64,000 nt of DNA from Blastocystis sp. Blastoise (Eukaryota > Protista > Bigyra: Opalinata), in contig JBBPEB010000032.1 of NCBI GenBank assembly GCA_039096225.1, positions 248,001 to 312,000 of the forward strand, written 5' to 3'. Below, one piece after another: positions 36,552-64,000 of the stretch. The first letter of the stretch is position 1. Every line of letters begins with the position of its first letter. The translations under genes were made by a program, and so were the position numbers. Under the pieces are notes generated by a model. That model was not told the origin of the DNA. It saw only the letters and a program-made list of their open reading frames with translations, and searched no databases.

Positions 36552-36712
36552 GAAAATGACGGCGTAATTCACACTCAGCATAGTAGAAGGTGTTTTCTTT
36601 AGAGTATGCATAGTAGACCAGGCCAATAGGCGGGTAGCCTATTGGCCATACTATGCTGAGCATGAATTTTTTCGTCATACTATGCTGAGCATAAATTATC
36701 CCGAAAATGACC
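36552..36712. repeat. GC-rich nested inverted/direct repeat upstream of the second GT49 gene
   Basis: GGCCAATAGGC-gggta-GCCTATTGGCC core (36621-36647), GCATAGTA/TACTATGC arms, CATACTATGCTGAGCAT twice. Confidence 0.85.
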
Positions 36713-38201: not shown

Positions 38202-39465
38202 ATAATAATATATATATAATATATAATATTATTATTATTATTTCTTCAGTCCTTTTTCTTTGGGTGTATATACAATCGAAGAAACAGATGCATTCACACG
38301 TTCGAAAATTAGTAATTTACATTTACCCGAAAGAATGGTATTCTCTTATTATAAAGGAGAAACTTTTAATGTGTTTCCCATTAATAAAATGAGAAATACC
38401 GCCATTGAGCACGTGACTACCACTCATTTCTGGTTAACGGATATGGATATGTGGCCAATGCGTATATATATATATATAATAAGTATAATAAGTATAATAA
38501 GTATAATAATAATAATAAGTATAATAATAATAATAAGTATAATAATAATAATAATAATAAGTATATATATATATATATAGAAGAGACATATGATCGTATT
38601 TTATCGCTTCCTGAAGAGTATCTCGCGGATACCAAATTGGCGCTAATTGTGCCCGCCTTTGAAATTGAAAAGAATAGAAAAAAATGTATTAGTTTTGAAT
38701 CTTGTGGAGTTGATTTATTTAATAGAATGCCTAGTAATAAGAAAGAGCTTGCCGAATGTTTGGAACGAAAAGAATGTGATAGATTCAGACCTAAACAAAG
38801 ATTACATAATTATTATCCTGAAAACTTTTTTATGGATAACGAAACGGTTGTTTTTGGTGTAAAATGTTTTAAAGGAAAAACACAAGAACCGTATATTAAT
38901 AATATATAATAATATATAATAATATATAATAATAATATATAATAGCATATATTCCACATTATTCTAGTTATGTTGTCGTTAAGAAGACCCCCACCATGCC
39001 CCTCTTTGACGAGCGTTTCGTTAATTACGGTTACAATAAGGTCCAATGGTTAGAGCACCTTCGATATGTCGGTTATTCCTTTATGGTCATTAATAATGTA
39101 TTTGCTATGGACTTACCCCACCCGAGGTATACATATATATTATTATTATTATTATGATTATTATAATTATGATTATTATGATTATAATTATGATTATTAT
39201 ATAACACTATATATATATATTATTATTATTATTATTTTAATAATAGTTAACTATATAACACTAAATATTTGCATATATATATTACTATATATATCATATA
39301 TATATTACTATATTACTATATATATATAGATCTCGTTATTTGAATAGTTTTATTAAGAGTATTCAAGACACAAAAGGAAAAGAAATGGAAATGTTGTTAG
39401 TATATGAACAATTTATGATGGAACTTCAACAGAATCCAACGCAATCAGTCATTCCCAAGTGCTAA
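36797..39465 (+). CDS. Glycosyltransferase family 49, type II membrane, with Thr/Asn/Asp-rich stem, 9 exons
   Basis: N-terminal [53 protein letters not shown]; all GT-AG; includes a 10-nt microexon at 37112-37121. Confidence 0.9.
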
Positions 39466-40734
39466 TTGAACTGTGTTTTGTACGGAGAATATATATATAT
39501 TTATTGATTTTCAATTATTTTAAATAATCACTCGTCTATACATATATTTTACTTAAAACCCCTTTTACTATATATATATATATATTTGTATATATTACTA
39601 TATATTTTATTATTTTATATATATATATATATTATTTGTTTTCCAAATTAATTCCAATTTATAAAATTTTTATATATTTCTCTAAAAATATTAAAATATA
39701 TCTGTATATATATATATATATATTCATTATTTCTATTCCTCTAACAAATCTCTATATATATATTATATATATTTGTAAAACACAACTTTAAAGTTTGTGT
39801 TGTTAGTGTGTATATTTCTCGTCTAAATATATATATATATATATATATTAACTACCTCTCTCTTAATTTATTATTTACATTTTTTTTTAACTATTTGAAA
39901 TATCTTTAATTATTTATTATTTATTAACATTACTTATTATACTTTTACCATAAATATTTAAATTCATTTTTTAAAATATGTTTTTATTTTTTACATTTTT
40001 TTTTTTTAAAATCTTTTTTTCGTTGACATTTTCTTCTTTTATATATGTATGTATACATATATGTATATATAAATCAAATTATTCATTAATATAGTCACTT
40101 TTCGTTTTAATATTGTACTTAGTTTTGTTCTTATTATTATTATATATATTGTCTATTGTTATTACAAACTATATATTGATTATTACATAAAAGTCATTCT
40201 ATTATTATTAAATATATATATATGATATTAAAAAAAAAAATCTTTAAAAATGGTTTTCAGCATATATAATTGATATTGAATGCCAAGACTATATTCATTT
40301 GATATTAAATTTATTTTATCTATCCATATATAGCATCAGGTATATTTTGTTTGTCAAATGAAATATTTTGTATTGTTTTCTTTATATAAAAAGTAAATTT
40401 ATATTATTATTTAACCTCTTCATTATGTAATAAAATTGATAATCTCTTGTATTGTTCAATAATACTTATATATATATTATTTTGAAATTTATACTCTTAT
40501 TTTTAAATAAATTATATTAACAAAACAATGATAATAAATAAGACAATGATAATTAATAACTTTAAAATATTCAGAAAATTGAATAAGATAAGGATACTAT
40601 AAGGAAATAAAAAACCAAAGTATATATAAACACATATAATATAAAATAGAAGGTCTTTTTAAATATTAATAAAAAATATATGAAATATAAAAATTATTGA
40701 ATTATTAAATCTATATATAAATAAAAATAAAACA

Positions 40735-42430
40735 TTATGATTTAGATTTTATTGATAATTATTATTCGATAAAAACGGTATTATCTAATCATAAATCATA
40801 AAAAGTAAATGAATAGTGATCACTACATAAATATATATAACAATAAAAAAACAATATATATAAATATATAAAACACACTAGAAGATATTTAGATTTCTTG
40901 TGGATACATTAAAGAATAAAAACGGTATCATTCAATCATATATCTATAAAAAAAAAAGGAAATAAAACAAGTGATAACTCTATAAATAAATAATATAAAA
41001 TTAAAAAAAGTATTATAATTTTTGTAGCCAATAATAATAGACAAAAACGGCATTATCCAATTATATATATCTATAAAAATTAGATATACTTTATAGTTAT
41101 ATAAATATAAAAAGTTAAATAAATAAATAAAAAAGAATACACTACAGAATATTTAAAAACGTTTGATAATACTTTTAGATAAAAACGATATTATCCAAAA
41201 TGAAATATTAATAAATAAATAAAAATAGTGTATAACATATATATAAATAAAAAGAATATATAAATAAATAGAATACTAACAAAGTATTTATATTCTTTCA
41301 ATAAATAAAATAGAAACAAACGGCAGTATCAATTGTATATATCTTATAAATAAATATACTTTATAGTAATAAATAAATAAAAGGATATATATAAATACTA
41401 ATAAGATATTCATAATTTTTTTAACGAAAAATCAGTAGATAAAAACGATATTATCCAAATATAAATATTATAAATAAACATAATAGTAATCAATATATAT
41501 AATATATAATAAAAAGTATTTTATTCCGTTATATAAAAAATAGATAAAAACGGTATTATCAAATTCTATATATATAAAATAAGCATACTTTATAAATAAC
41601 AAAGTATATAGAAAAAACTAGTAAGTAAAATTGATTCTTTGAATAATTAATGAATAAAAACGATATTATTCAATTAGAAATCATAAAAACAAATATACTT
41701 TACAGTTATAAAAAACAGTAAGTATTTTTATTCCTTTCAATAAATGAAATAGGTAAAAACGGTATTATCCAGTCATATATCTTAAAGATAAGTATACTTA
41801 ACCGTAATATATAAATAAATATAAAAATAAATAAATAAAAAAGAATACACTAGATAATATTTATATTCTTTCAATAATAAAAATACTGGGTAAAAACGGT
41901 ATTATCCAATATAAATATATATATTAAAAATAATAAACAGAATAGTGGATAATATATAAATAAATATTAAAAAAAAACTAAAAAAGTATTAAGATTATTT
42001 GAACAATAATAAACTAGATAGAAACGATACCATCTAATAATAATCTTGATATATAAATATACTTTATAGTCAAATATATAATAAAAATTAGACATATAAA
42101 AAGTATTTTATTTCGTTATATAAAAATAGATAAAAACGATATTATCAGATTCTATATATATAAAACAAATATACTTTATAAATAGATAAATAATTAAAAT
42201 ATATAAATAAATTACTAAAAAGGAAATACATAATAAACTTGAATAGTGAATAAAAACGATATTACTCAATTATATATAGAACAAATACACTTTATAGTAA
42301 TATATAAACAAAATAGATATATATACATATATAGAATAATAAAAGTACTTATATTCTTTCAATAAATAAAATAAATACAAACGGCAGTATCAATTATATA
42401 TATCTTATAAATAAATATACTTTATAGTAA
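40735..42430. repeat. Array of 14 degenerate ~125-bp units, each an imperfect hairpin with loop AAACGRYA
   Basis: Core GATAA-AAACGRYA-TTATC recurs every 99-147 bp. Confidence 0.9.
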
Positions 42431-42639
42431 CAAATAAATTAATATAAAAAATTATAAATATAAAAAATAAACAATTTATATATAAATAAATAAAATCAAA
42501 AAAAAATATATTATAAAACAAATATAAATTATAAATAAATAAAAGAAAACCTTCGAAATTATATATATATATATTCATAGAGTTGAGGAGAAAACAATAG
42601 ATAAGGAATAATTATATGGAGAGAAGAAATATATATATA

Positions 42640-43440
42640 TATAGTTAACAAACAAAATTAGATTAAATTATAAAAATGAGATATAATAACATCAAATATA
42701 TAGTTAACAAATTATATATAATATAAAAAAATAGATTGAATTATAAAAATGAGATATAAATAACATCAAATATATAGTTAACAAATTGATATATAATATA
42801 AAAATTAGATTGAATTATAAAAATTAGACATAATAACATCAAATATATAGTTAACAAATTGATATATAATATAAAAAATAGATTGAATTATAAAAATGAA
42901 ATATAATAACATCAAATATATAGTGAACAAATTGATATATAATATAAAAAATAGATTGAATTATAAAAATTAGATATAAATAACATCAAATATATAGATA
43001 ACAAAATGATATATAATATAAAAAAAATAGATTGAGTTATAAAAAATGAGATATAATAACATCAAATATATAGTTAACAAATTGATATATAATATTAAAA
43101 AAATAGATTGAGTTATAAAAATGAGATATAATAACATCAAATATATAGTTAACAAATTAAATTAAATTATAAAAAATTGAGATATAATAACATCAAATAT
43201 ATAGTTAACAAATTGATATATAATATAAAAAATAGATTGAATTATAAAAAATGAAATATAATAACATCAAATATAGTTAACAAATTAAATTAAATTATAT
43301 AAAAATGAGATATAAATAACATCAAACATATAGATAACAAAATGATATATAAAAATTGAGATAAAATAACATCAAATATATAGGTAACAAATTGATATAT
43401 AAATAACATCAAATATATAGATAACGAAATGATATATAAT
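42640..43440. repeat. ~73-bp tandem minisatellite, about 12 copies
   Basis: AACATCAAA recurs at 42688, 42762, 42835, 42908, 42982, 43058, 43133, then shortened copies to 43405. Confidence 0.92.
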
Positions 43441-44233
43441 ATAATATAAAAAATATTATAAAACAAATAATAAGAATATATACATATATATACATTCAAT
43501 AGGACGGGAAATAGATCACATAATGATCCAAAGTATATATATATATATATAGAAAGGTATTATAACAATTGACAACGAACTAATTTTTATTAGGTTTTAA
43601 TTATATATTACTTTTTTTTTTTTTATTATTTTTAATTGTAACTAACTACTTAATAATTTTTTTTTATTTTTATTTTTTTTTAAATATATACATATTTTTT
43701 TATGTATATTTATAATTATTATTATTTTTTTTTTATTTTATTTTAATAATTTTTTTTTTAATTATTATTTTTAAAGATATAATAATATTATTATTATTAT
43801 TATTATTAAATTGTTATAATTACCTTATATTATATAAGAATTATACTAAGAGGATGAGAGAAGGAATTATTATGAATAAAACGATATATATATATATATA
43901 TAAGATTCACGGGATAAAAACTTATAAATATACATATAATAAAAAAAAATGAAAAATATATTTAAAAAATAAAATATATAACTACTAAATATATATATTA
44001 TAAATGTAGAAGAAAATATATTTATCAAATAAATAATAATTCCAAAAAAAAATTTACATATAAATATCCTCTTAATAAAAAAGAAAATGGAAAAGTGAAA
44101 AAAAATATAACAATAAATATTGTTATTAGAGTATAATAAGAAAAAGTGTTAAAAAAAGTGAAAATTGATATTCATATAAAGAATAATCAAATTAATAAAA
44201 AAATATATATATATATATAATATAAAATAGATC

Positions 44234-47200
44234 TTAACGTGGTTGATTCTGTGTATAATTATAATTCATATTATTATAAATTGGAATAGAATTAGTATTA
44301 ATAGATCTATTAGAAGAAGGCATAGTATTATTATTATTATTATAAGGAGTATTAATAAATGAAGTTGTATGTTTATTTAATTGTGGACTAATACTAAATA
44401 GAGTACCTGAAGGATTATTATTTATATTATTATTATTATAAATAGGTTCAAAATGAGTTGTTGTACTTAAATTATTATTATTATTATTATTTATAGGTAG
44501 ATTAGTATTAGTTCTATATATATCATTTGAATCTAAAGTAGATATTGGAGTAGTATTCATATAATTAGTAGAAGATAAAGTATTATTATAGTTATTTGTA
44601 TTATTCATATTATTATTACTCATAATATTATTTCTATTAATAGGTATAGGTACAGACATACCTACAGAAGGTATATTATTATTATTACTCATAATATTAT
44701 TATTATTAGAAAGAGGAGGAATATAAGATGAATTATTATTATTAATATTATTATTAGGAAGAGGAGAAATAGATGTTAATTGATTAATATCCATAGGATG
44801 AACGGATACATTATTATTTTTATCTATATGATGATATATAGTATTATTTTCAATAGATTCTTCTATTGTAGGTACATGTATATTAAATTCATTTATATCA
44901 TTTTCATTTGTAGTAAACCCAGTCATATTAACATTTTCTTCTATTTCTAGATCTTTTACCATCTTATTATGTTCTTCTAATAAAGTATTATTTTCTTGTA
45001 TATCATATTTAGCTCTTATTTTATCTATAGTACGTCTTTCTAACTTTATATCATCTTTTAAATCCGCTAATTTCTTCTTTAATCTATTATCTAAAGTTAA
45101 TACTTGTTCTAATATCGAATGTGGATTTGTTAAATCTACATGATAATCAGTTAAATATGTTTTAAATAATGATTCTAACACACCACGTATATATATAAAT
45201 GAACTTATATTTACACCTTCTTTTGGTACAACTAATATTTTATAATTATTATCATTTAATACATATTGATGATATAATATATTATAATCATTCATATATT
45301 GTTTTAATGTTTTATCATTAGTATCATATTGACTTTGTAATTCTTTATATTTAATAATTACATAATTATATTTCTCTTTCATAGAAGCAAAATCAGCATG
45401 AGAATATTTTAATGTTTGAGCTGTCTTTTCATTCTCTTTATGTAATTCAGTATATGAAGCTACAGATTCTTTAAATTGTTCATCTAATTTTTGATATTGT
45501 TCAATTATACTTTTATTATCACTTTGTAATTGTTTTATTTGATCTTTCTGTGATTGAACCAATTGTTTCGTTTTATTATTTTCTAATGTTGAAGTTTGAA
45601 GAAGTGCTTCTGTTGAACGTACTCTCGATTGTAATGTTTGTAATTTTGTTTGATCTTCATTCTGATTCTTCGTTATAGTTATTATATGATTATTCATAGA
45701 TTCTATATTATTCATTATATTCTTTAATTTATTAGTATATACATCTTGTATATTATTAGTATTAGTATTATTATTTATATATTGAGGAATAGTAGAAGAA
45801 TATATAAATAAATTATTTTTATCTATATATACACTAATAGAATCAATAGATTCTCGATAAGATTGAATTATAGCTGATAAATTATTTGTATTATTATTTA
45901 CTGATTTATATTGATCTTTTATTTGATTTAATTCATTTATTAATTGATTATTCTTTTGATTTAATTCTTGTATTTTATTCATATATTGAATATTTTCTGA
46001 TTTCTTTGTTTCAACTACTGTTGATAATTGTTTATATATATCTGTATATTGATTATTATGATAAGAATAACAAATACTAAGAATATATAATAAATCAGTT
46101 AATGAAGATACTTTATATGTATCCATATGTATATTTAATATAGATTGTTCTTCATTTGATAATTGTAATTGAATTGATAACGGTAAGAAAGGAGATACAT
46201 TCAAATTACTCATCATATTATTCTTATAAGATTTAAATGAATTCATTAATGTAGTTATATTTGTAACTAATGGATTAGTTGATAGTATCATTGGAGAAGA
46301 AAATAATAATGAAGATGAAGGAGATATAGAAGTAGTAGAAGAAGAATAAGAGAATTGTCCTGTTATATATGTCTGTAAAATAGATATAAATGAATCAAAT
46401 GTATATTCTTGTTTAAATAATGTATTTATAGTATTCATTATATAACTTAAATATTGTTTATATGTATTATGATTTGATTCTAATTCTTGATGATTAGTCT
46501 TTAATTGTGTAATGATATCAATAATATATTTATCAGGATTCTTCATATATTCTTCTTGACTAAGAGATACTATATTATTATTTACAAATAATATAGTATA
46601 TATATTCATTATATATTGATAATATATTTTATATTGTTCTTCATAATATTGTTTTTCTTTAGTATTTTGAGTATATAAATTAGTTTGATTCAATTTCATA
46701 TTTTCTAATTCAGTATGAATACTCTCTATATATTTATTACGTTCATTTATTACAATATCTTTATTATTTACTTCTGTTTGTAATAAATTATATTTATTGA
46801 TTATATCTTTATAAGTATCTACAAGTGTCGTATATTGATTCGTTTTCTCTTCTAATTGTGAATCTATTAAAGATCTATAACGTATATGTTCTATATTTAA
46901 TTTAACTAAATGATCCCATAATTCTTGAAATCTTTGTATTAAACATGTTAAATATTCATCTAAAGATAATTGAGAAACATTACTATCTGTTAATAAAGGA
47001 AGAGAAGATATAAATGGTGTTGTAGTTGAACTTATATTCACTAAGGATTGTTTTAATATATCAATAGCATTTCGGAAATTATGTAATCGCTGACGAACAA
47101 CAGAATCTACTTCTTTATAAGTAGTATTTAATTGAGTATAATTACTATTTAATTGAGTATAATTAGTATTTAATTGATTATAATCATTTATTTTTTGGTC

Positions 47201-48318
47201 TAGTTGATTTGTTAACGATTGTATTTGATTCTTATAAGAAGTATCTAATTGAATATATTCATTATTCTTTTGGTCTAATTGATTCTTTAGTATTTGAATT
47301 TGATTCTTATAAGAAGTATCTAATTGACTATAATTAGTATTTAATTGATTATAATCATTTATCTTTTGATTCAATTGATTCGTTATTGACTGGAGCTGAT
47401 TCTTATATGAAGTATCTAATTGAGTATAATTACTATTTAATTGATTATAATCATTTATCTTTTGTTCTAATTGATTTGTTAACGATTGTATTTGATTCTT
47501 ATATGAAGCATCTAATTGAGTATAATTACTATTTAATTGATTATAATTAGTATTCAATTGATTATAATCATTTATCTTTTGGTCTAATTGATTCTTATAA
47601 GAAGTATCTAATTGATTATAATTAGTATCTAATTGATTATAATCATTTATCTTTTGATCTAATTGATTCTTTATTATTTGAATTTGATTCTTATAATTAT
47701 TATCTAACAAATTATATTCATTTGTTTTTTGCTCTATTTGTTTTGTTAATAATTGAATTTGATTCTTATAAGAAGTATCTAATTGACTATAATCATTATT
47801 CAATTCATTATAATCATTTGTTTTTTGTTCTAATTGATTCTTATAAGAAGTATCTAATTGATTATAATTAGTATTTAATTGATTATAATCAGTATTTAAT
47901 TGATTATAATTAGTATTTAATTGATTATAATCACTATTCAATTCATTATAATCTTTTGTTTTTTGATCTATTTGTTCTTTTAATAATTGAATTTGATCTT
48001 TATAATTATTAATATCTATATTCATTTGTTTAATAGTATTCGTACTAGATTCTATTGATGTTTCTAATTCTTGTATTTTATTCATATCATTTATTGTAGA
48101 CGTATTTGAAATAGTTACTAATTCATGTTTTATAAATATATCCCATAAACAGGATATTAATAAATCATTAACTAAAGAATCAGATAGAGTATTTGTAAGT
48201 AAAATATCATCTGAATAATTTTCAAATAATATATTACTTTGTAATGTTGATATATAACTCTTATATTCTTCACTTTGTTGATTAAATATATTCATAGCAT
48301 CATCATCTAAAACATGAA

Positions 48319-48411
<93 letters not shown>

Positions 48412-51400
48412 CAATATCAATAGTATCAGAAATAGATATAATAGAATTATTATTATTAGATATAAATAAACTATTAATATTCTTATTATATTGAGTAATA
48501 TTCTTTATTATATTACTAATAACATTAATATTCTTTATATCAATATCATGTTCATTCTCTTTATTTATTAGTTTCTCTTTATATTGTTCTATTTCATTAT
48601 CTTTACTCATTAAAGAACGTCTTAATACTAACATATTATCACGTAAATTCTCTACTTCTCTTTTATTCTTATCTTCTATATCTTTAGTATTCTTTATATT
48701 TATAGATAACATATCTATCTTATCATGCAAACGTGGAATCATTTCAAAATATAATTTTATTGCATTTATTAATTGTATAGATGAACTTAACATTAAAGAA
48801 TCACTATCATTTTCATCATTATTATTTTCATTATTATTAGATAATGATAAAGAAAGAGAAGAAGATAAAGATAAAGGAATATTTATTCTATCTTTATAAG
48901 TATCTTCATAAGTATTTATATAAGATTCAATATCATTAATTTCTTCTTTATATATACGATTCATATTTTTAATTGAATTACATTCTTTTTCTAAAGTATC
49001 AAATTTCATTTTTAATTCATTATTTTCATTATATAAATGATTTTTATCAGAATCTAATTGATTCTTCTCTTTAATTATATTATTATAATTCTCTTCTAAT
49101 TTATCTTTTTCTTCTTTATATTGATTCATAGTTATAGTATTAGTTGATTCATATTGATCTATACGTTGATGTTCAGATATTAATAATATATATAGATTAC
49201 GAATTGAAGTTGTTATAGACTCATGATCTGTTATAGTAATAGAATCTATATATTCATTAATTGTATCATCTTTATTATTCTTTATATATGTATTAATTCG
49301 AGTATCATTAAGAGAAGTATTTAATTCATTTATTAATGTATTATATTGTTTTAATAATATAGAATATTCATTTGTTTTTAGTATATAATCTGAAGATAAA
49401 GATGTTTTTTCATTTGCTAAATCATTTAGACTATTCTTTAAATCATCAATTGTTGAATGAAGAGTAGAAATAGTATTCTTAGAGTCATTACTATCATTCG
49501 TTAATTGAGAAATACTATTCTTTAACTTTATATTTTCTTCAGATAATTGAGAAATCTTATTCTTTGAATCATTTATAGATATTGTTAATTGAGAAATTGT
49601 ATCATTTAAAGAAGAAATTATATTCTTAGAATCCATATTTTGATTGGATAATCGAGTAATAGTATTATTTAATGTAGTAATAGTATCCTTATTCTCTGTT
49701 AATGTATTTTGATAAGAAGAAATAGTATTTTTAGATTCTTCTATTTCATTTGATAATTGAGAAATATTATTTTTATTATCATCTATAGTTTTATAAAGAG
49801 AATCAATTAATGATTTCGAATTATTATTCTCCTCTGATAATATATCTATTTGTTGTTGTAAATCAGATATCGTTTGAGTTAATGAAGAAATAGTCTCATT
49901 ATTCTTTATTATAGTATCTTTTAAAGATGAAACATCTGTCTTTGAAGTATTATTATCAGTAGATAATTGATCTATTGTAGATTTATAAGTATTAATATCA
50001 TTAGATAATTGATCTATTGTTGATTTATAAGTATTATTATCAGTAGATAATTGATCAATCAGTTGTTTGTTTTCTTCAATTGTTGATTTATAAGTATTAT
50101 TATCTGTAGATAATTGATCAATCAGTTGTTTGTTTTCTTCAATTGTTGATTTATAAGTATTATTATCTGTAGATAATTGATCAATCAGTTGTTTGTTTTC
50201 TTCAATTGTTGATTTATAAGTATTATTCTCATTAGATAAATCTTCAATAATCTTCTTATTATCTTCAATTGATTTATTTAATGATTTAATTGTTAATTGT
50301 TTACTATTAACATCAATAGATAATTCATTTATTTCTTTCTTTAACGATTCAATACTAGTATTTAATGAAGAAACAGTGATATCATTATTATTATTATTTG
50401 TAGCTAATTGTTCAATTGTTGATTTATAAGTATTGTTTTCATTAGATAATTGTTCAATTGTTGATTTATAAGTATTATTTTCAGTAGATAAATCTTCAAT
50501 TATTTTCTTATTGTTTTCAATTGTAGATTTATAAGTATTAATATCAGTAGATAAATCTTCAATTCTTAACTTATATTTATTATTATTAGTAGATAAACCT
50601 TCAATTGTTGATTTATAATTATTATTTTCAGTAGATAAATCTTCAATTGTAGATTTATAATTATTAATGTTTGTAGATAAATCTTCATGTGTTGCCTTAT
50701 AATTACTATTTTCATTAGATAAATCTTCAATTACCTTCTTATTATTTGTCTTTAAATCTTCAATTATCGATTCATATTCATTATTCTTAATAGATAGATC
50801 ATTTATATGATTAACTAAAGATTCAATATTCTTTTTATTTTCATCAATAGTATTAGTATATTCATGAATATGATTCATACTATCATTACGTTCATTCGTT
50901 AATACTATAATTTGATTCTTATATTTATCAATTTCATTATTTAAAGAAGATATAATACTATTCAATTCTTCTATTTTATTTGTTAAATCTTGTATAGTAG
51001 TATTTGAAGTATTTATATGTTCATTTTGTACTTTTAATAATTTATCTTGTGTTTCTTCAAGTTGTTTATTGGATCTATTCAAATGATCTTTTAATACAAG
51101 AGCACTATTCCTATAATTAGTAATAGTATTATTTATATGATTCATATTATCTTCAAGATAAAGTATTTTTGATTTATTATCATCAATAATTCTAGAGAAC
51201 TCATTATTTGATTTTAATAATTCATTATTTGATTTTAATAACTCATTATTCTTTTCAGATAATTCATTATTCTTTTCAGATAATTCAGTATTTGATTTTA
51301 ATAACTCATTATTCTTTTCAGATAATTCATTATTTGAATTATTCATAATATTGATTTCATTTTCAATTTCTTCAATTCTATTCTTTTGTTCTTCTATTGT

Positions 51401-54400
51401 TATATTTAAAGATTGAATTGTATTATGAAGTGTCTTTTGAATATCATTTAATCGATTTATTTCTTGTTCTTTAGAATCATTAGCCTTATTTATTGTCGAT
51501 ATCTTTATATTCATCTGTTCTTCATTCTCTTTTAATATACCTATATCTTTCTTCTTTGATTCTATATCATTCTGATAATCTATAATAGAAACATTAAGAG
51601 ATTCTATAGTATTCTTTAACTGATTCTTCTCTTCTGTTAATGATGTTATACTTATTAATTTCTCTTCTAAAGTCTTCTTTGTATTCAATAATAATTCATT
51701 TATAGTATTCATATTCTTATTCATATTCGTAGAATCTACTTGAAGTTTCTCATAATCTTTCTTATATTGATCGATAGTAATAGTATTAGTAGTAACAGTA
51801 GTCTTTAATTGATTAATATCTTCAAGTAATTTATTATTTATTGAATCTTTTTCTTCTAATTCATGATTTAATATATCTAATTGACTTTGTAATTGATTCT
51901 TTATAGTATTAAGAGAATCAATTGTTGTTGTTAATTCTTTATTCTTACTAGAAAGTGATACAATAAGACTTTCTTTTTGATCTGATTCAGAAGTAGAATT
52001 CATTATAGATGTTTGAAGAGATACAAGATTTGTATTTAATTCTATATTCTTATTCTTTATATCAGCTAATTCATTCGTAGAAATATCTAAATTATGTTGA
52101 AGAGAATGAATAGTATTATTATATTCATTATTCTTCTTTTGTATTTCTTCTTTTTCTGTATTAATAGAATCAATTGTATTATTTAAATTATGTATTATTT
52201 CTTCTTTTTCATTCTTAATAGAATCAATTGTATTATTAAGATTATTTATAGTATCTTGAAGTTCTTTAATAGATGTTTTAGACACTAAAATATCGTTATT
52301 AAGAGTATCAATTGTGTTCTGAAGAGAAGGAATACTATTCACTTGAAGATCTTCATTCTTTGTGGATAGAGTCTTTATTACTGTTTGTTTCTCTTCTAAC
52401 TCATTATGTATTTGATCGATAGTATGTTGAAGAGTAACAATAGTAGTCTGTGAATCATTTATCTTTATACTATTATTCTCTAACTCATTAGTCTTTATAT
52501 TTATAATAGTATTCATATTAGATATAGAATCTTCTAATGACTGTATTCTTACAACTTTCTCTTCTATTTCTTTTGTTAAAGAATCAATTGTTGTTGTAAG
52601 AGAAACATTCATTGAAGTGATATCACCATTCTTTATCTTCATATTATTATTCTCAATAGTTAAAGAATCAATATTATCCTTCATATTATTATTATCAATA
52701 GTTAAAGAATCATTATTATCCTTCATATTATTATTATCCATAGTTAAAGAATCAATTGTATTCTTCTTCTTATTATTATCAATAGTTAAAGAATCATTAT
52801 TATCCTTCATATTATTATTATCAATAGTTAAAGAATCATTATTCTTCTTCAATTCATTTATTATATTATTAAATTCATTATTTTTATTCTTTATTTCATT
52901 ATATTCATTAGTTATAGAAAGTAAATTAGAATTTATTTCATTATTTTTATTCTTTAATATATCTATTAATTCATTTAATGAAGTTATATTATTATTTAAT
53001 ACTATATTTTTCTCTTCTAATTCATGTATAGTATCTATGGAATTCTTTACTATCAATTTATTTTCTTCTAATTCTTGAACTATATTATTATATTTATCCA
53101 TATAACTAGATAAATTACTTTGTAAATCATTATTAGTATTCGTTATATTTGTTAAAAATACTTTTTGTTCATCATCATTTGTATTTAATTCTTTTATTAA
53201 TTTCTCATAATTATCTATCTTTGTTAATAAATTATTATTAGTATTCATTAATGATGTTATAGTTGATTTTAATTCATTATTATTCTTTAATTCATTATGA
53301 TAATCAGTTTCTATTGTAGTATATTGAGATACTAATATAGAATTACTTGAATTTAATTCATTATATTCACCTAATAATGTTTTATATGTTGTATTTAGAT
53401 CATTATATTCTTTTTGAACTGATTTATATTTATTTTCAAACTCTTTATTTATTGTTGATAAATCAATTATATTATTCTTATTTATATTGATTTCTTTTAT
53501 TTTCTCTTCTATAGTATTATTTAATGTACTTATATTCAATTGTAAAGTAGTATTTAATTGACTCTTTCTTTCGATAGTATTCTTTAAATCAATTATTTCA
53601 TTATTTAATTCAATTATTTCATTTTCATATTTATTATTAGTATTCTCATTAGATAGTTTTAGTTCATTTATTATACTATTATTAGATTGATTCATATCTT
53701 CTATAGTCTTTTCTAATGATTCAATCTTCTCTTTATATTTATCAACATATAATTGTAATTCATTATTTTTTTGTATATATTCATTCTCTTTATATAATAA
53801 ATCATTCTTTTGTTCTATAGATAATTCTTTTAATCGTTGTATTAAATCTATATTCTTTGTATTTAATATATTCATATTCTTTTTCATATCTTCAATTTCA
53901 TTCTTATAATTATCTATCTTATTATTATAATTATTCATTATTTCTATAATCTTCTTTTCATGATATATACTTATAGAATCCATTTCATTCTTATATATAG
54001 TATTCATATGTTTTAAAGATATTAATTCAACTTGCTGCTTTTCATTAAAACTATTTAAATTCTTATTTTCTTTTTCTATATATTGATATTTTAATTCTAA
54101 AACTTGAATTTCAGTATTTAATCTAAGAATCTTATTATTCATTTCTTCTATATTCTTATTATTCTCTTTAATATTTATTAATAAATTCTTATTTTCTTCT
54201 ATAATTTTATTATATTTATTTAATATAGAATTATATTCATTCTCTTTTATTCCTATTTCTTTTTGTAATAATATTATTATAGATATATATTTTGTAGATA
54301 AAGAAGAAGATATAGAATTCTCTTCTAATATTGTATTACATAAAGATTGAATCTTATTATCTTTTATAAAAGTTATTAATTTATTCATTTCTGTTTTATA

Positions 54401-57400
54401 TTCAGAATCAGACATATATATAAATTCAGAATCAGAAGATTCGGATGAACTAGAAGAACTAGAAGAATCAGATAAACTAGAAGAATATATTTTTTGTTTT
54501 TCTTTCTTTTGTTGTAACATAACATATTTTGATACATTTTCTAATAATAAAGAAATTTCTGATGATTTTTCGGTTAAATCATTCTTTAATTGATTAATAA
54601 GAATACTCTTATTCTGTAATTCATCTTTATATACTTCTATATCTTTATTATATTGAATTAATTCTTCTTCTAATTTATTTATTATTTTCTTTTTATCATT
54701 TAATTCACTTAATATATTTAACTTTTCATTTTTAATATCATCTATCTCATTATTCATAAGATTATTTATATTTCGTTCTTCTATTAATTTTGATTTTGAT
54801 TTCATATATTCATCTTGTACTACTTTTGTTAATTCACTATATTCATCTAATTTATTCTTATAAGAAGATTCTATAGTAGTTATTTGTTTCTTTAATGAAT
54901 CAATTTCTAATTCATAACTATCTATCATTTCTTTAAATTGATTATTACTATTCATATTATCAGTTAATAAACGAACTCGTGTATTTAATTCTATATTCTC
55001 AATCTCCATCTTTTTATATAATTCATCAAGTTCATTCTTTGAAGTTATAACTGTATTTAATGCTATTTTCATCTCTTCTAAAGAGACTTCTACATCATTT
55101 TTCTTAGTTAATAACTTATTATTATCTTCTAAAAGTGAATTATTATTGATTTTCAATTCTTTTATTTCATTCATTAAAGAAGTTATAGTATTATTCATCA
55201 ATTTAGTTGATTCAATTAATGATATATTCTTATCTGATATATCTTTATTCAATATATTTATATTATTTAGATCTTCTTCTAATGATGATTTCTCTTTTAA
55301 TAATTCAGAATTCTTTATAGATATTTCATTTATAGAAGTAGATAAAGTATTCTTTTCATTTGTTATTAATTGATTCTTTTCTTCTAAAGAATGAATACTA
55401 GTATTTAATGTTGAAATAGTCTCTGATAAACTATGATTCTCATCAACTATTAAGGTATACTTAGTCGATAAAGTCGTATTTGTTAATGATAATGTTGATA
55501 TATTCGATTTCAAATCTATTATTGTATTCTCTAAGGTACTACTAGTAGTTGATAATTCTTCATTTATTTTCTTAAGAGAAGTATTATCTGTAGTTAATTG
55601 AGTATTATTAGTTAATAATTCTTCATTTATTTTCTTAAGAGAAGAATTAGTATCAGTTAATTGAGTATTAGTAGTAGATAATTCTTCATTCGTTTTCTTA
55701 AGAGAAGTAATATTTGTAGACAATTCAGTATTATCATTAAGTAATTTAGTATTATAAGTAGATAAATCTTCGTTAATCATTTTAAGTGAAGAATTTTCAT
55801 CAATTAATTGAGTATTAGTAGTTATTAATTCTTCATTAGTATTTTTAAGAGAAGAATTTTCATCAATTAATTGAGTATTAGTAGTTATTAATTCTTCATT
55901 AGTATATTTAAGAGAAGAATTTTCATCAATTAATTGAGTATTAGTAGTTATTAATTCTTCATTAGTATTTTTAAGAGAAGATATATCTTTAGTTAATTCA
56001 GTATTATCATCAATTAACTTAGTATTATAAGTAGATAATTCTTCATTCGTCTTCTTTAGAGAAGAATTTTCATCAGTTAATTGAGTATTAGTAGTTGATA
56101 ATTCCTCATTAGTATTTTTAAGAGAAGAAATATCATCAGTTAATTGAGTATTAGTAGTTGATAACTTTGAATTTTCATCAATTAACTTATTATTATAAGT
56201 AGATAATTCTTCATTCGTCTTCTTAAGTGAAATATTATCATTAGTTAATTGAGTATTAGCATTTAATAATTCTTCATTAGTATTTTTAAATGAAGATTTT
56301 TCATCAATTAACTTATTATTATAAGTAGATAATTCTTCATTCGTTTTCTTTAGAGAAGAATTCTCATCAGTTAATTGAGTATTAATAGTTGATAACTTTG
56401 AATTTTCATCAATTAACTTATTATTATTATTTAATAATTCTTCATTCGTCTTTTTAAGTGAAGTATTATTATTAATTACTTGTTGATTTTCATTATCTAA
56501 TTCATTAGCAGCATTTGTTAATTCTTCATTAGCTTTTTGTATACCCATAAAATCATTATATAAATGATCATAATTCAACTTTAATTGATTATTATCTTCA
56601 ACTAATACAGTATTCTTATTCAATAATAATTCATTATTATCTTTTAAAGAAGAATTCTCATTTATTAATACAATATTTGTATCTTGAATTGTCTTTAACA
56701 TAGTGTTTATTTCTATATTCTTATTACTTAAAGTAATATTTTCATTATGTAATAATATATTATAATCATGATATTCATTTATCTTCTTCATGACTAACAA
56801 TTGTTTCGATTCAATTGAAGTCTTTTGTTCTATAATAATATTCTTTAAAGAAAGTATTTCTTTATGAAGATCATTCACTTGCTGTTGAATCAGTCGTTCT
56901 TTCTTTAACAACTCTTTATTAGTTGATAACAATTGTTCTTTATCTTCATTAAGAGAAAGAATAATAGTCTCTTTATTCTTTAATGTAGAAATATAAACTT
57001 CTTTTTCATTTATTAATAAATTCATACTATTTGATAAAGATTCTTTTACAGTTATTAAATCATTCATAGTATTAGTAAGAGATGCTTTATCTTCTATTAA
57101 TTTCGTATTCTCTATTTGTAATGAATGATATATATCATCTATTTCTTTATTCTTAGAAACTAATTCATTATTAGTCTCTAATAAAATAGTATAATTATGC
57201 TCTAAATCCTTATATTGAGAAGCTAAAGTATTTTTAGCAGTCGATAATTCATTATTAGCAGTTGTTAACTCATTAATCTTACTAGTTAATTCAGTATTCT
57301 TATCAATAAGATTATTATTATTATCAGTTAACTCAATATTCTTAGTAGCTAATTCAGTATTCTTAGTAGTTAACTCAGTATTCTTAGTAGCTAATTCAGT

Positions 57401-60400
57401 ATTCTTAGTAGCTAATTCATTATTCTTAATAGTTAATTCAGTATTCTTATCATTAAGATCGTTATTATTATCAGTTAATTCGTTATTCTTATCAATAAGC
57501 TCCTTATTCTTATCAGTTAACTCAGTATTCTTATCAATAAGATTATTATTAGTATTAGTTAATTCAGTAATCTTATTAATAAGATTATTATTATTATCAG
57601 TTAACTCAGTAATCTTAGTAGTTAATCCATTATTATTATCAGTTAATTCAGTAATCTTATCAACAAGATTATTATTATTATCAGTTAATTCAGTAATCTT
57701 AGAAGTTAATTCATTATTAATATCAGTTAATTCATTATTCTTATTAATAAGATTATTACTAGTAGTAGTTAATTCATTATTCTTATCAATAAGATCGTTA
57801 TTAGTAGTAGTTAACTCATTATTCTTAGTAACAAGATTATTATTAGTATCAGTTAACTCAGTATTCTTAGTAGTTAATTCATTATTAGTAGCAGTTAATT
57901 CATTATTATCATCAGTTAATTCAGTAATCTTAGTAGTTAATTCATTATTAATACCAGTTAATTCATTATTCTTAGCATCAAATTCATTATTCTTATCAGT
58001 TAACTCAGTTATCTTATCAACAAGATTCTTATTACTATCAGTTAATTTATTATTAATATCATTTATTTCAGTTATCTTATCAACAAGATTAGTATTATTA
58101 GCAATTAATTCATTATTACTATCAATAAGATAATTATTACTATCAGTTAACTCTATATTCTTATGAATTAATTCATTATTCTTATTATGAATTCTACTTA
58201 TAGAAGAAATAATCATAGTTTCTAAAGAATCAATAGTAGTTTTATTATTATCATCATTATCATTAGCATTCGTATCATTAAGGGTAATAATATGATTATA
58301 AATATTATTTAACTTATCATTATTCAAAGTATATTGATTGACTATTTCTTTATAATTATTATTTAATAATTCATATTTATTCTCAATAGCCAAATTAGAT
58401 TCTTTTAATTCTTCATAACTATTTAATAATTCAATACTATTATTTTCTAAATATTCAATTTTCTTTTGATTCATTATTTCTTTATCATTCATATATACAA
58501 TAGTCTTATTAATATCTTCAAGAATTGTATCTTTATTATTAATTATCATCGAATAAGATTCATTTAAATAATTCATATTCTTAAGAATTAACTCTTTATT
58601 CTCTTTAAAGAATTCAGTTAAGTTATTAGTTGTTCCATTTGTTAATAATAAATTACTTGTTAATACTTCAAATCCATTCATATTCTTATTCATATAAATA
58701 TCTGAATCCTTTTTCATTCTACGATAATCATCAAGTATATCGAATAATTGACTGAATAACTCAATCATAAGGGCATTATCGTTATTATTAACATTATTAT
58801 CGTTATCGTTATTATTATTATCTTTATTAATTAAATTCTTTAGCATATTTAAGATAGTTTCTTTATTTAAATCTTGATTAGTTCCATGAATATAAGTAAT
58901 ACTATTATATAATAATACTTTAAAGGAATATAACATAGTTTTACTATAATTATAATCACTAAAATAATCAATAAATCGTTTTTCATTCTCAAATAATAAA
59001 TTACTATAACTTATATAAATATTATTTTGAGTTTCAAGAATTACTTTATAACGTTCAGATAAAGTATTATATTTATTAATAATACTATTCATTTGTTCAA
59101 CATAAGTATTATTCATTTCAACTATCTTATTCTTCTTTTCTTCTACTATCTGTTGAGTATTTTCTAATACATTTTCTATATCTACAAGTTTCTTTGATAA
59201 ATTAGATTTATCTTCTTGTAATTGAGTAATGATCTCTTTATCTTTCTTAATAATAGTTGTTAAACTATCTAATTCTGATTTATAATATACATTATTAATA
59301 TCAGTTACATTCATTTTATATATATCCATTTCTAAAAGAGACTTTTTAATTTCATTATCTTTAATAGCATTAACAGAAGTATTCATTTGATCAGATAAGA
59401 CTTCTATTTCATTCTTCTTTGTCATATATTCTTTTAATAATAAATCAATATTTTCATATTGTTTCATATATAACATACATATATCTTCATATTGGAATAG
59501 ATCTTTAAAAGAACCATTCTGAATATCTTCTAATGGCATATTAATACTTGGTTTATCACTACTTTCAATACAAGAAGGAATCTTTACAAATAATATATTT
59601 GTAATTAATTTTAATGAACCTTCTAAAGTACTTAATATATGACGTGTTGCTCTAGTTACAGAAAATAATATATTTGAATCAGTTTCAGATATACAAATAG
59701 TTTCTATCTTATTATCTTGATCTATACCCATTATTTCAGAAATAGGATTAAAATAATTAATCATATAATTATATATCTTTTTATAATTATCTTCAAGAAT
59801 ACGATTATAAAGAGATTTTGAATTAGCATCATTTCTTAATGAACGAACTTTATTTTGTAATTGATCTAATTCTTCTTCTAATTCATCATTTTCTTTCTTT
59901 TTATTATGATAAAGTTCTGTTAAATTATCAAGTCTTTGTTGATAATTCGATATTAATATATTCAATTTCGTTTGATTTAATACTAATTCACGATTCTTTG
60001 TAGATAATGAAATTATTTGTTGCTGTTTCTTACTTGTAGCATTCTTATTCTTATTCTTATTATTAGCAACTATTTTCTCCATACGATCTTCTAAGGTATC
60101 AATAGTCTTTTGAAGACATTCTTTCTCTTTAGTAAAAGTAGTAGTCGAAGAAGATAATTCTTCTTTCTCTTTAGTAAGAGATATATTCTTCGTAGTAAGA
60201 CTAGTATTAGTAGAAATAAGTTGCTCTTTCTCTTGAATAAGAGTAGCATTAGTAGAAGATAATTCTTCAATCTTAGTAGTAAGAGTATTATTAGTAGAAG
60301 ATAAATCTTCTTTCTCTTGAATAAGAGTAGTATTAGTAGAAGATAATTCTTCAATCTTAGTAGTAAGAGTATTATTAGTAGAAGATAAATCTTCTTTCTC

Positions 60401-63400
60401 TTGAATAAGAGTAGCATTAGTAGTAGATAAATCTTCAATCTTCTTATTAAGAGTATTATTAGTAGTAGATAAATCTTCAATCTTCTTATTAAGAGTATTA
60501 TTAACAGTAGATAAATCTTCAATCTTCTTATTAAGAGTATTATTAACAGTAGATAAATTTTCTTTCTCTTTATGAAGAGTATTAATTTGATGAATTAATT
60601 CTTCTTTACGTTTAGTAGAAGTATAAAGTTTATTATTAAGATCTTCTTTGATCATCTTTATATTTTCATTATCTTTCTCTAATTCTTCTTTAGCTTTTAC
60701 TAAGGAATTAATAGTTATTTTATTCTCTTCAATAGTATTAGTAAGAGATGTATTAGTATCAACTAAGGTATTATTAGTAGAAGAAAGAGTAGATATTTGT
60801 TTTTCAAGATCTTCATTTGTAGCAATTAATTCATTATTTATACTTAATAAAGTAGTATTAGTAGAAGAAACAGTCTCTAAATTCTCTTTTAATTCATCTT
60901 TTTCAAAAGATAATGTAGTTACTTGAGTTATTAAATCTTCTTTCTCTTGAATAAGAGTAGTGTTAGTAGAAGATAAATCTTCTTTTTCTTTACTAAGAGT
61001 AGCATTAGTAGCAGACAAATCTTCAATCTTAGTAGTAAGAGAATTATTAGTAGAAGATAAATCTTCAATCTTAGTAATAAGAGAATTATTAGCAGTAGAT
61101 AAATCTTCAATCTTATTATTAAGAGAATTATTAGCAGTAGATATATCTTCTTTTTCTTTAATAAGAATAGCATTAGCAGTAGATAAATCTTCTTTTTCTT
61201 TATTAAGAGTATTATTAACAGTAGATAAATCTTCAATTTTATTATTAAGAGTATTATTAACAGCAGATAAATCTTCAATCTTATTATTAAGAGTATTATT
61301 AACAGCAGATAAATCTTCTTTTTCTTTATTAAGAGTATTATTAATATTCGATAATTCTTCTTTTTCAGATAATAACTTTTCATTATGACTAACTAAAGTA
61401 TTATTTTCTAAATTAACTTTAGAATATTTTGCATGAATATCGATATTTTCTTCAAGTAAATGAGAATTCTTCTTTTCAATATCTTCAATAGTTTTACAAG
61501 ATATATCATATTTTACTTGTATATCTTCATTCTTCTTTATTATTTCAGAATTATTAGCTAATAATGAAGATATATGTATATCTTTTTCAGAAATATCTTT
61601 CGACATTTTATTATTCTTATTTTCAAGTAATTTATTTTCTTGTAAAATAGTACTATTATGTTTCATTAATTCTTCATTCTTTTGAAGTAATAGTTGATTC
61701 TTATCATTAAGATCATCATTCTTTTGAAGTAATAGTTGATTCTTATTATTAAGATCATCATAATTCTTTCTATTAATAGTATCTTCATTTCTTAAAGCAT
61801 TATATAATTTATTAATTTGAAGAGAATAATCTCTTTCAGAATCTAATTCACATTTTAATTGATTATTCTTTACTATTATAATACTATAACGATGTTCAGA
61901 ATCATTAAATAATACTTCTAATGATTTTATCTTCTCTTTTAATTTAGTATTTTCAAATAATACTAATTTACAATCATTATATATACTATCTAATCTCTTT
62001 GTTAGTATATCAATTTTCTCATTATATTCATCAAGTGGTAATTGTTCTAAATTGAACTTATAATTATTAATAATTTCACTTATAGTATGAATTTCTCTAT
62101 CATAAATTAGTTTATTCTCTTCAATAGTATTTTGAAGATCTATAATTTTATTTTCATTAGCAGTAATATTTGTCTTTGATAAATCATTCTTTATTAATAA
62201 AGTATTAATCAAAGTATTCAATTGTTTTGTTTCATTATATATAGAAACAGAATCATCTTCATATAATTTAACTTGATATTTCAATGATTTATTCTCTTTT
62301 ACTATTTCTTCATATTCTTCTTTTGGAATAGTTATAGTTATAGAAGAAGAAGAAGATATAGATTCTTCAGATAGAGGTATAGTTGTAGTAGATAATAATT
62401 CTTGAGAAATAGGAATATTAGTTTTATTAGTATTAGTATTAGTATTATTATCAGTTAATTTATTTTCTTGAGAAATAGGAATATCAGTTTTATTAGTATC
62501 ATTATTATCAACAGATAATATTTCATTATTATTATCATAATTATTATCAACAGATAGAATTTCATTATTATTATTATCAACAGATAATATTTCATTATTA
62601 TTATTATCAACAGATAATATTTCATTATTATTATTATCAACAGATAATATTTCATTATTATTATTATCAACAGATAATATTTCATTATTCTTTTCAGAAT
62701 AATAAGAAGAAGGAGAAGAAATAGATTGTTCTTCATCCATTATATGATCATTAATATTATTATTTGGTAGTATATCAAGTGTAGAATTAAATGGTGAATA
62801 AGGATCTTTATAATGATTACTATATAAAGAAGGTATAGTTAATAAATCATTATACACTTGTTCTAATATAGAAGAAGTAGTTGTCATTAATAAAGGACAT
62901 TCATTATTAATCATAGTATTCATAGTATTATTATAAATATCATTTTCTATAATCATATTAAATACTATTTGATGTAAACAATCATATATAGGTCCATCTA
63001 TTTGAGAAACATGATTATTCTTTAAAATAGTATCAATATATTTAATACATCGATCATATATATATTCATAATAAACTTTTTCAGTTTCATTCGTATAACT
63101 ATTTACAGTCTTTTCCATAGTTATATCTTTATTAAGAATAGTATCTGTTATTGATTTATTCGATATCATAATATTAAATACAATTTGATGTAAGAAATCA
63201 TAAATAGGTCCATTTAAATCAGCAACTTTATTCTCTAATATAGAATCTATATATTGAATACAAAGAGAACTTACTTGCTCATAATATTCTTTTTCTTCTT
63301 CATTCGTATAACTATCTACTGTCTTTTCAACAGAGAAATCTTTATTAATAGCAGTAGTAGTAGTCATAGTTATACCATTAATCATAACATTAAATAATAT

Positions 63401-64000
63401 CTTATGTAAATTATCATAAATAGAACCATCTAAATCTATAATATTATTATCGATCATTAAATTATTAAGATATGTATTACATAAATCATTTATATATTCA
63501 TAATAATCTTTCTCTTCTTCATTAGTATAACTATTTACAGTCTTTTCTATAGTTATATCGTTAAGAGAAGAAGGGCTTTCAAGGATAGTACTTTCATTAT
63601 TGTTATCTTCATTATCATTATTGTTATCTTCATTATTATTATTATCAATAATATCACTATTATTATCTTCATTATTATTATTATTATCAATAATATCACT
63701 ATTATTGTCAACAACACTATTATTATTATTATCAACAACACTATTATTATTATCTTCATTATTATTATTATTGTCAACAACACTATTATTATTATCAACA
63801 ATACTATTATATTCACTACTATCCTTATCATACTTAGTTAATAGAGTAGGAGTTTCACCTGTTTGAAGAATAGTATTTACTACATACATAATATCAGTAG
63901 CATTATTAAAATGTTTATCAACATAATTCTTTAAAGAAGATAATTCTTTCTTATTCTTCTTATCCTGAGTGACTAATGTTATTATATGTTGATATAAAAT
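44234..64000 (-). CDS. Giant coiled-coil protein (>6580 aa), one uninterrupted exon, 5'-truncated by window
   Basis: Frame stays open from the window end to TAA at 44234; long heptad arrays (LSTTNNT/LNKKIED, ELTDNNN, YNQLDTS); Asn/Pro-rich tail. Confidence 0.9.

Follow-up and report, generated by a model that had tools for sequence, protein, structure and literature searches.

A locus-specific tandem array of quasi-palindromic units with a conserved eight-nucleotide centre in Blastocystis

What keeps eight nucleotides nearly constant at the tip of each of 14 neighbouring fold-backs whose stems differ from copy to copy? The question is raised by an AT-rich tract in a Blastocystis assembly (33.34 Mb in 34 contigs, ~21% GC), within a window of 64,000 nucleotides (C21:248001-312000) for which an earlier note had proposed either a multivalent protein-binding RNA or an array of DNA hairpins such as a centromere or origin. 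The pattern is real and unusual, and it is confined to one duplicated locus.

Architecture and setting of the array

The window contains 17 matches to the motif AAACGRYA, as opposed to 6.1 +/- 2.3 in shuffles, and 14 of the 17 fall exactly at the loop starts listed in the earlier note (40773 to 42379), on the + strand only and within 1.6 kb. AAACG..A is invariant across these 14 units, as had been claimed, and centre positions 6 and 7 vary solely as R and Y. Cutting at the motifs gives 14 pieces that align with one another and prove to be homologous members of a tandem repeat that has diverged; its period is 99-147 bp (from W1 to W14 successively 147, 125, 138, 135, 125, 105, 110, 99, 137, 128, 112, 120 and 125 bp); Tandem Repeats Finder did not detect the array. 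The 22-nt core of the unit is laid out as a 7-nt left stem, an 8-nt centre and a 7-nt right stem, with the consensus TAGATAA-AAACGRYA-TTATCCA. The best-conserved columns of the units form a compact block of 9-10 bp.

40715 to 42449, + strand: array of 14 diverged tandem units, W1-W14, each an imperfect palindrome around a conserved core
40766 to 40787, + strand: W1 core, centre AAACGGTA, covariance model score 44.4 bits
40913 to 40934, + strand: W2 core, GAATAA / TCATTC with one A.C mismatch; the paralog has a perfect TTATTC
41038 to 41059, + strand: W3 core, centre AAACGGCA, with a private 12-bp outer helix
41176 to 41197, + strand: W4 core, centre AAACGATA
41311 to 41332, + strand: W5 core, closing pair C-G, sister of W14
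41436 to 41457, + strand: W6 core
41541 to 41562, + strand: W7 core, sister of W12, covariance model score 47.3 bits
41651 to 41672, + strand: W8 core, a perfect 7-bp TGAATAA/TTATTCA
41750 to 41771, + strand: W9 core, GGTAA/TTATC with a G.T
41887 to 41908, + strand: W10 core, TGGGTAA/TTATCCA
42015 to 42036, + strand: W11 core, closing pair G-C, with a private 13-bp outer helix
42127 to 42148, + strand: W12 core
42247 to 42268, + strand: W13 core
42372 to 42393, + strand: W14 core, closing pair C-G; a stem A in the window is G in the paralog

All the inner stems quoted in the earlier note are present, but not every one is fully paired, W10 containing one G.T and W11 one A.C mismatch; the ATAC/GTAT stem of W14 has the closing pair C-G, and its sister W5 carries an A.A mismatch. 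The quoted outer arms are present as well: folding recovers the 12-bp helix of W3 and the 13-bp helix of W11, and TAAGTAT of W9 pairs with ATACTTA. Outer blocks AAAGTAT (left) and ATACTTTATAG (right) are recognisable in 9 units, the 7-bp outer blocks being complementary in 9 units, and the remaining 5 units have a CACTA...TAGTG-type outer pair in their place. The contention that structure and loop, not primary sequence, are conserved is too strong, because the units are 14 homologous copies of one repeat with a readable consensus and shared outer blocks; the same GATAA/TTATC stem is common to 8 of them.

The array lies in a gene-free spacer between two convergent genes, with a 73-bp minisatellite beside it and the end of a segmental duplication close by.

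39340 to 39465, + strand: last open reading frame (ORF) piece of the upstream gene, outside the duplicated segment
39466 to 44233, unstranded: gene-free spacer of 4.8 kb between two convergent genes, containing the array and the minisatellite
40489 to 40490, unstranded: sharp left breakpoint of the duplication, 225 bp before unit 1; the other copy runs from C21:48841
42654 to 43438, + strand: 73-bp minisatellite adjoining the array, with a copy number that differs between the paralogs
44234 to 63889, - strand: intron-free ORF of 6551 codons for an Asn-rich coiled coil, ending 1.8 kb from the array and co-duplicated with it

The GC content of the spacer is about 12.7-15.2%, the lowest of the window, and it contains no ORF > 69 aa. 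Its length is ~7x the median intergenic length of 645-719 bp given for tortoise Blastocystis isolates (PMC12129017). The array shares the composition of this surrounding spacer, with 15% GC overall (core 28%, non-core 12%), against 59% for a tRNA-Leu in the same window. The + strand gene upstream was called GT49 by an earlier reading; Pfam gave no match on its two largest ORFs. No relatives were found for the giant protein, either with its N-terminal region or with its 601-aa C-terminal region, and exact look-up of an array ORF gave no match. Several candidate features of the spacer were discarded. The 73-bp minisatellite is no more similar to the ~125-bp units than shuffles are, and kinship between the two was rejected. 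The Blastocystis downstream element TGTTTGTT at 42647-42654 (- strand) was dropped as a marker of polyadenylation, no such element being reported for the tortoise isolates (PMC12129017). The outer blocks resemble splice sites (AAA|GTATTT ... TTTATAG|T), but on that reading the "exons" would consist of A-rich linkers full of stops.

A second array, 98.5% identical, lies at C21:48841-50924, 240 kb upstream on the same 1.15-Mb contig. It makes up the left-hand end of a duplicated segment of >= 31 kb, to which the 73-bp minisatellite and the giant gene belong as well. A simple 240-kb tandem duplication is rejected, since nothing to the left of 40490 is present twice. Beyond these two arrays the family was not met again in the genome: a 24-nt core pattern allowing <= 3 mismatches had 17 matches genome-wide, all 17 inside the two arrays, and a covariance model of the core found 14+14 matches at 35-47 bits, all in the same two arrays, the next being a singleton of 30 bits, a trivial inverted repeat of A/T. 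Besides the paralog, blastn of the array against the genome returned only low complexity of the ATAAATAAATA and ATAAATA types, so a dispersed family was set aside. Rfam gave 0 matches at gathering score over the window and, at E <= 10 over 39466-43690, 5 sub-threshold matches to miRNA models, 0 of them inside the array. The earlier note's remark that it recognised no known family is thus borne out, Rfam being empty for the array even at E <= 10 and the genome searches having met no dispersed transposable element family. In metagenome contigs a spaced pattern of three loops was found in >119 stretches, 0 of which had hairpin context, and these are therefore chance matches or unrelated repeats. 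The array is not a known RNA family, a transposon family or a genome-wide satellite; it is one quasi-palindromic unit of ~125 bp amplified head to tail, whose copies are old and occur only here and in the recent paralog.

Pairing of the arms and conservation of the centre

Arm pairing exceeds chance in arm-swap, complementarity and covariation tests, in agreement with the earlier note, and the folds are weak. In the arm-swap test every left arm was joined to every right arm of the 14 units and folded, with arms of 10, 25 and 48 nt. Own arms gave fold energies of -9.7 versus -5.1 kcal/mol for cross-unit combinations on the + strand, and -15.7 versus -8.9 kcal/mol on the - strand; the weakest of the six tests, 10-nt arms on the + strand, had p = 0.01, and the remaining ones had p <= 0.00015, with 5e-5 for 48-nt arms on both strands. 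An energy-free count of local complementarity outside the inner stem likewise gave 9.43 for own and 7.58 for foreign arms (p = 2e-5), and the controls (reversed but not complemented, and direct) were flat. The array is therefore a dyad-symmetric AT-rich tandem repeat, with homologous units that have intra-unit inverted symmetry beyond chance.

The covariation score was higher than in 500/500 shuffles and in every slid register, a result that comes from ~3-4 independent double changes among paralogous units of one genome. The closing pair is Watson-Crick in 14/14 units (A-T in 11, C-G in 2, G-C in 1), for which the chance probability is ~0.001, or 0.006 if W5 and W14 are counted as one lineage. 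Pair 50-67 changes from G-C to A-U in three units (p about 0.01). Such covariation among the units of an array can be mimicked by template switching (PMC8794818).

When single units are folded as RNA, z averages -1.2 for the + strand and -2.2 for the - strand; for + strand DNA it averages about -0.7, with values between +0.6 and -1.9. In roughly one unit out of three the fold is no better than that of shuffled sequence, and the RNAalifold consensus of the 14 units contains only the 5-bp inner stem, at -1.4 kcal/mol. Thermodynamic stability and a GC content above background are expected of a structured non-coding RNA, and the array fails on both counts. Standard pairs make up 83.7% of inner-stem cells on the + strand versus 89.8% on the - strand. 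The strand preference that the earlier note drew from wobbles stands in part: eight inner-stem A.C cells become G.U on the - strand as it had indicated, but W9 and W10 prefer the + strand, so that wobble use is mixed and picks no strand cleanly. Counts of wobbles over the full arms (10 vs 26) were dropped as a means of choosing the strand because the alignments are noisy.

Between units of the array, pairwise identity is 79% in the 22-nt core (shuffled 46%) and 61-64% in the arms (shuffled arms 52-55%), i.e. the arms are almost saturated, and long-term change has been far slower in the centre than in the rest of the unit. Arm identity reaches 91% for W5/W14 and 82% for W7/W12 but only 48-77% for other pairs; with arms so near shuffled similarity, most units are effectively independent lineages. 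An invariant AAACG..A in units with near-saturated arms looks like purifying selection on a recognition sequence.

The recent past, as read from the two paralogs, differs from this long-term record. Substitutions between them amount to 1.30% in the core (4/308), 1.22% in the non-core of the array (17/1393), 0.44% in the unique flanks (5/1138), and 1.55 / 1.47 / 2.24% at codon positions 1 / 2 / 3 of the giant gene, positions 43692-43763 being kept out of the counts. At the long-term core/arm ratio of ~1/5 the core should have changed 0.75 times and it has changed 4 times (P = 0.007); since the duplication the core has not been slower than the rest of the unit. The same comparison confined to the eight invariant columns has low power, with ~1.4 changes expected and 1 seen. 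Among the individual changes are, in the paralog, a G-to-C within the "invariant" loop of unit 1 and the insertion of one base in W3 and, in the window copy, changes of W2 and W14 that break pairs. In the paralogous W2 core two nearby changes produce a core identical to that of W8, a pattern that is compatible with conversion.

Explanations for the conserved centre and the paired arms

The reading that we favour, tentatively and with somewhat less than even confidence, is that the array is a tandem repeat akin to a minisatellite, restricted to its locus, whose existence and evolution are those of a DNA element. A unit that became single-stranded during replication or repair would fold back on itself, and differences between its arms could then be copied repeatedly from one arm to the other by intra-strand template switching or hairpin-templated repair. 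Such copying would yield complementary, seemingly compensatory changes and unit-specific pairs of arms without selection on an RNA. Replication template switching is a documented source of hairpins and of apparent compensatory changes that arise without selection (PMC8794818). This process, together with the single locus, the background composition, the weak folds, the mixed wobbles and the neutral-looking recent divergence, is what leads us to favour a DNA-level minisatellite; mixed wobble use between the strands is expected of a process acting on DNA. The covariation of the closing pair and of pair 50-67 fits selection on pairing equally well.

The weak point of the DNA-level minisatellite is that template switching does not explain the invariant centre. 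The centre and the first stem pairs might be kept in either of two ways: lesions at the hairpin tip may be repaired from sister units by short-tract conversion at the centre, or a sequence-specific protein may act there. Short-tract conversion has been proposed for the conserved cores of classical minisatellites; its focus on the hairpin tip is here something we infer, with one weak supporting case.

The centre is explained more naturally if the units form a functional hairpin array that is recognised through its loop, as RNA or as DNA. This is a reasonable possibility, though we hold it with reserve, and its positive support is the pattern itself. The more specific proposal of a multivalent scaffold, in which ~14 weak stem-loops with an invariant AAACGRYA/URYCGUUU loop would present themselves, as - strand RNA or folded single-stranded DNA, to a putative loop-reading protein, is rather doubtful. 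We know of no description of such a multivalent hairpin scaffold from Blastocystis or from any other stramenopile.

The RNA form of this proposal, which we consider unlikely, supposes that the array is transcribed and its loop bound by a protein. The - strand would most plausibly be the source, by read-through, as a very long 3' region of the giant gene or as a separate non-coding RNA, and the ~14 weak stem-loops, with URYCGUUU as their loop (AAACGRYA if + strand), would resemble the repeat modules of long non-coding RNAs. A conserved loop on co-varying stems is the classic signature of a hairpin read through its loop, and several observations favour the - strand: more of its inner-stem cells are paired, eight of them by the A.C to G.U exchange, it folds better against shuffles, it carries only 4 AATAAA hexamers in the array as against 42 on the + strand, and the array lies downstream of a giant - strand gene with which it was co-duplicated. 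But the same strand has 38 runs of five or more T within the array, W9 and W10 favour the + strand, and shuffles fold as well as a third of the units do. Structured RNAs of AT-rich genomes are normally GC-enriched, and at 15% GC the hairpins here are of marginal stability. The confinement of the family to a single (duplicated) locus and a core that has been no slower than its flanks since the duplication also speak against an RNA.

Alternatively the units may be hairpin or cruciform sites in DNA, read at the tip or spacer by an enzyme or binding protein, e.g. a tyrosine recombinase, an HUH/rolling-circle nuclease or a polar replication or transcription barrier between the convergent genes. The units resemble such sites in that their inverted arms enclose an asymmetric centre of 8 nt and all of them point the same way, mixed wobbles suit DNA better than one RNA strand, and both the convergent genes and a duplication breakpoint 225 bp from the edge of the array provide a fitting context. 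Against this, an A/T stem of 5-7 bp that carries a loop of 8 nt has, in DNA, a folding energy near 0 kcal/mol, and the motif is absent from the rest of the genome. Neither array adjoins a recombinase or Rep gene, the neighbours being the so-called GT49 gene and the coiled-coil gene; the flanking ORFs that were scanned showed neither a recombinase nor a Rep domain, and the spacer, with no ORF > 69 aa, offers none. Judged as core sites of a tyrosine recombinase, the units have a spacer of suitable length but arms that vary and co-vary, and they do not qualify; judged as rolling-circle/HUH origins, they have the conserved loop and lack a Rep domain in the scanned flanking ORFs. In lox/FRT and attC sites the conserved part is the arms or stem bases, not the centre. 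We consider DNA hairpin sites quite unlikely.

It is improbable that the array is a homotypic cluster of 14 double-stranded sites of ~10 bp (AAAACGRYA), read by a monomeric factor and serving as enhancer, insulator or terminator of a neighbouring gene, in which the dyad would be incidental. The compact 9-10 bp conserved block, the uniform orientation and a roughly nucleosome-scale spacing agree with such a cluster, but an always-paired closing pair and the co-variation of the arms are left unexplained, and the motif is not enriched elsewhere (6 matches outside the arrays vs 3 in a control).

A decayed tandem fold-back transposon or MITE, with units of terminal inverted repeat, loop and terminal inverted repeat and AAAGTAT / ATACTTT as terminal repeats, would suit the unit size, the overall fold-back shape and the complementary outer 7-bp blocks of 9 units; with no dispersed copies by blastn, core pattern or covariance model, and 14/14 units in one orientation, it is largely refuted and now very improbable.

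Low GC marks centromeres in diatoms, fellow stramenopiles, and a gene-free island with dyad-symmetric repeats that is the lowest-GC stretch of the window, 4.8 kb between convergent genes and so long relative to the median intergenic length (PMC12129017), might be a centromere or part of one; this is the least credible reading of all. The earlier note had reasoned that one array per chromosome would point to a centromere, and the distribution is a different one: two copies lie 240 kb apart on one 1.15-Mb contig and the family is missing from 33/34 contigs, so that a shared centromeric satellite is excluded.

Significance and relation to known systems

Should a protein indeed read the centre, the locus would offer a natural and compact case of a multivalent hairpin array, in a gut protist that has been little studied, and would give a handle on a new RNA- or DNA-binding activity. 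Should the array be no more than a DNA-level palindromic minisatellite, it serves as a warning that a conserved "loop" and "compensatory" stems in tandem repeats can pass standard covariation controls without an RNA gene. The array is also a palindromic, AT-rich tract of fragile appearance where a large segmental duplication has its edge.

Among systems in which an enzyme acts on folded or inverted DNA, lox/FRT sites share with the array the inverted arms around an asymmetric 8-bp spacer, but their arms keep a conserved sequence and show no co-variation, and the array has no adjacent recombinase gene. The attC / VCR arrays are likewise imperfect palindromes of ~60-140 bp in one orientation; here there is no integrase nearby and there are no cassettes between the units, and attC conserves the base of the stem, not the tip. 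Geminivirus/CRESS rolling-circle origins resemble the units in having a folded DNA hairpin with a conserved loop and a variable stem, but the array is without a nearby Rep gene and its loop is unlike NANTATTAC.

The closest RNA counterpart is the Xist A-repeat, with several conserved cores of ~25 nt, a short stem-loop, variable A/U-rich spacers and a proposed multivalent protein binding. That repeat has a GC-rich core and proven transcription, whereas the array has a GC content of 15-28% and is known from its DNA alone.

Hairpins made by template switching (PMC8794818) show the same complementary arm changes and perfect short stems and would fit the unit-specific pairs of arms. They do not account for the conserved loop of the array, in which no individual switch event could be reconstructed. 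Jeffreys-type minisatellites are similar in that diverged units contain a short conserved core, perhaps tied to repeat turnover and not to a role in the cell. Their cores are GC-rich, common to many loci and not placed at the tip of a fold-back, unlike the array with its one locus and its dyad around the core. PATRR-type repeats and other non-B-DNA satellites are, like the array, AT-rich, non-coding tandem imperfect palindromes, and the array also adjoins a rearrangement breakpoint; it departs from the PATRR type in that its arms are short, mismatch-rich and unit-specific, in its restriction to a single locus, and in having an asymmetric 8-nt centre that is far better conserved than the arms that flank it.

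A segmental duplication bearing the giant coiled-coil gene

On the contig that holds the window (C21), a segment of at least 31 kb is present twice in direct orientation, an intrachromosomal segmental duplication whose copies are 240 kb apart; the length is a lower bound, the right end lying beyond the compared stretch:

Window 40490-64000 and beyond (C21:288490 to at least 319767): duplication copy 1
C21:48841 to at least 80000: duplication copy 2

On its left side the duplication has a sharp breakpoint, 225 bp away from the palindromic array of 14 AAACGRYA units. The giant coiled-coil gene (window 44237-63889, - strand) and its duplicate have diverged by 1.55%, 1.47% and 2.24% at codon positions 1, 2 and 3, so that positions 1 and 2 have changed nearly as far as position 3, and the two genes differ by many in-frame length changes. 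The protein is either weakly constrained or subject to reshuffling among its own internal repeats. A search for its relatives in two protein libraries found none.

The minisatellite at window 42654-43438 is homogeneous, with a 73-bp unit and 91% matches, and its copy number is unequal between the paralogs (294 gap positions). Kinship of this minisatellite with the 125-bp array units was considered and rejected; the two are unrelated.

Strand skew and splice-like blocks around the array

The A/T skew reverses near 40.6 kb, the + strand being T-rich to the left (window 39466-40714) and A-rich to the right (40715-44233). The sense strand is therefore T-rich downstream of each convergent gene, and the whole array belongs to the domain of the - strand gene. 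In the array units, the conserved outer blocks resemble splice sites (AAA|GTATTT ... TTTATAG|T, with ~90 nt between), a likeness that may have arisen by chance in such AT-rich sequence:

Window 41283-41375, and the corresponding positions of eight further units: splice-site-like outer blocks

Dispersed and unrelated repeats

More than 20 sites, spread over many contigs, share 96-100% identity with a stretch of ~142 bp, which is therefore one copy of a dispersed, young MITE-like element:

Window 36561-36702, upstream of the second gene that the earlier note named GT49: MITE-like element copy

The same stretch had been described there as a "nested GC-rich palindrome with CCAAT boxes".

On contig C16, a short hairpin, GAATG-AGGTGTAAG-CATTC, occurs five times in the stretch L036:700-1140 (G000:C16:646500-646940) with identical stems and irregular spacing. 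After these, a ~75-bp repeat with a hairpin of its own is present in three copies (L036:1150-1345). The GAATG/CATTC hairpins are a separate family with no relation to the AAACGRYA units.

The downstream gene element motif

Across the whole window TGTTTGTT occurs 13 times, versus 2.8 expected, three of the 13 matches falling within coding repeats of the giant gene. This excess contrasts with the genome paper on tortoise isolates, in which the Blastocystis downstream gene element shows no enrichment (PMC12129017).
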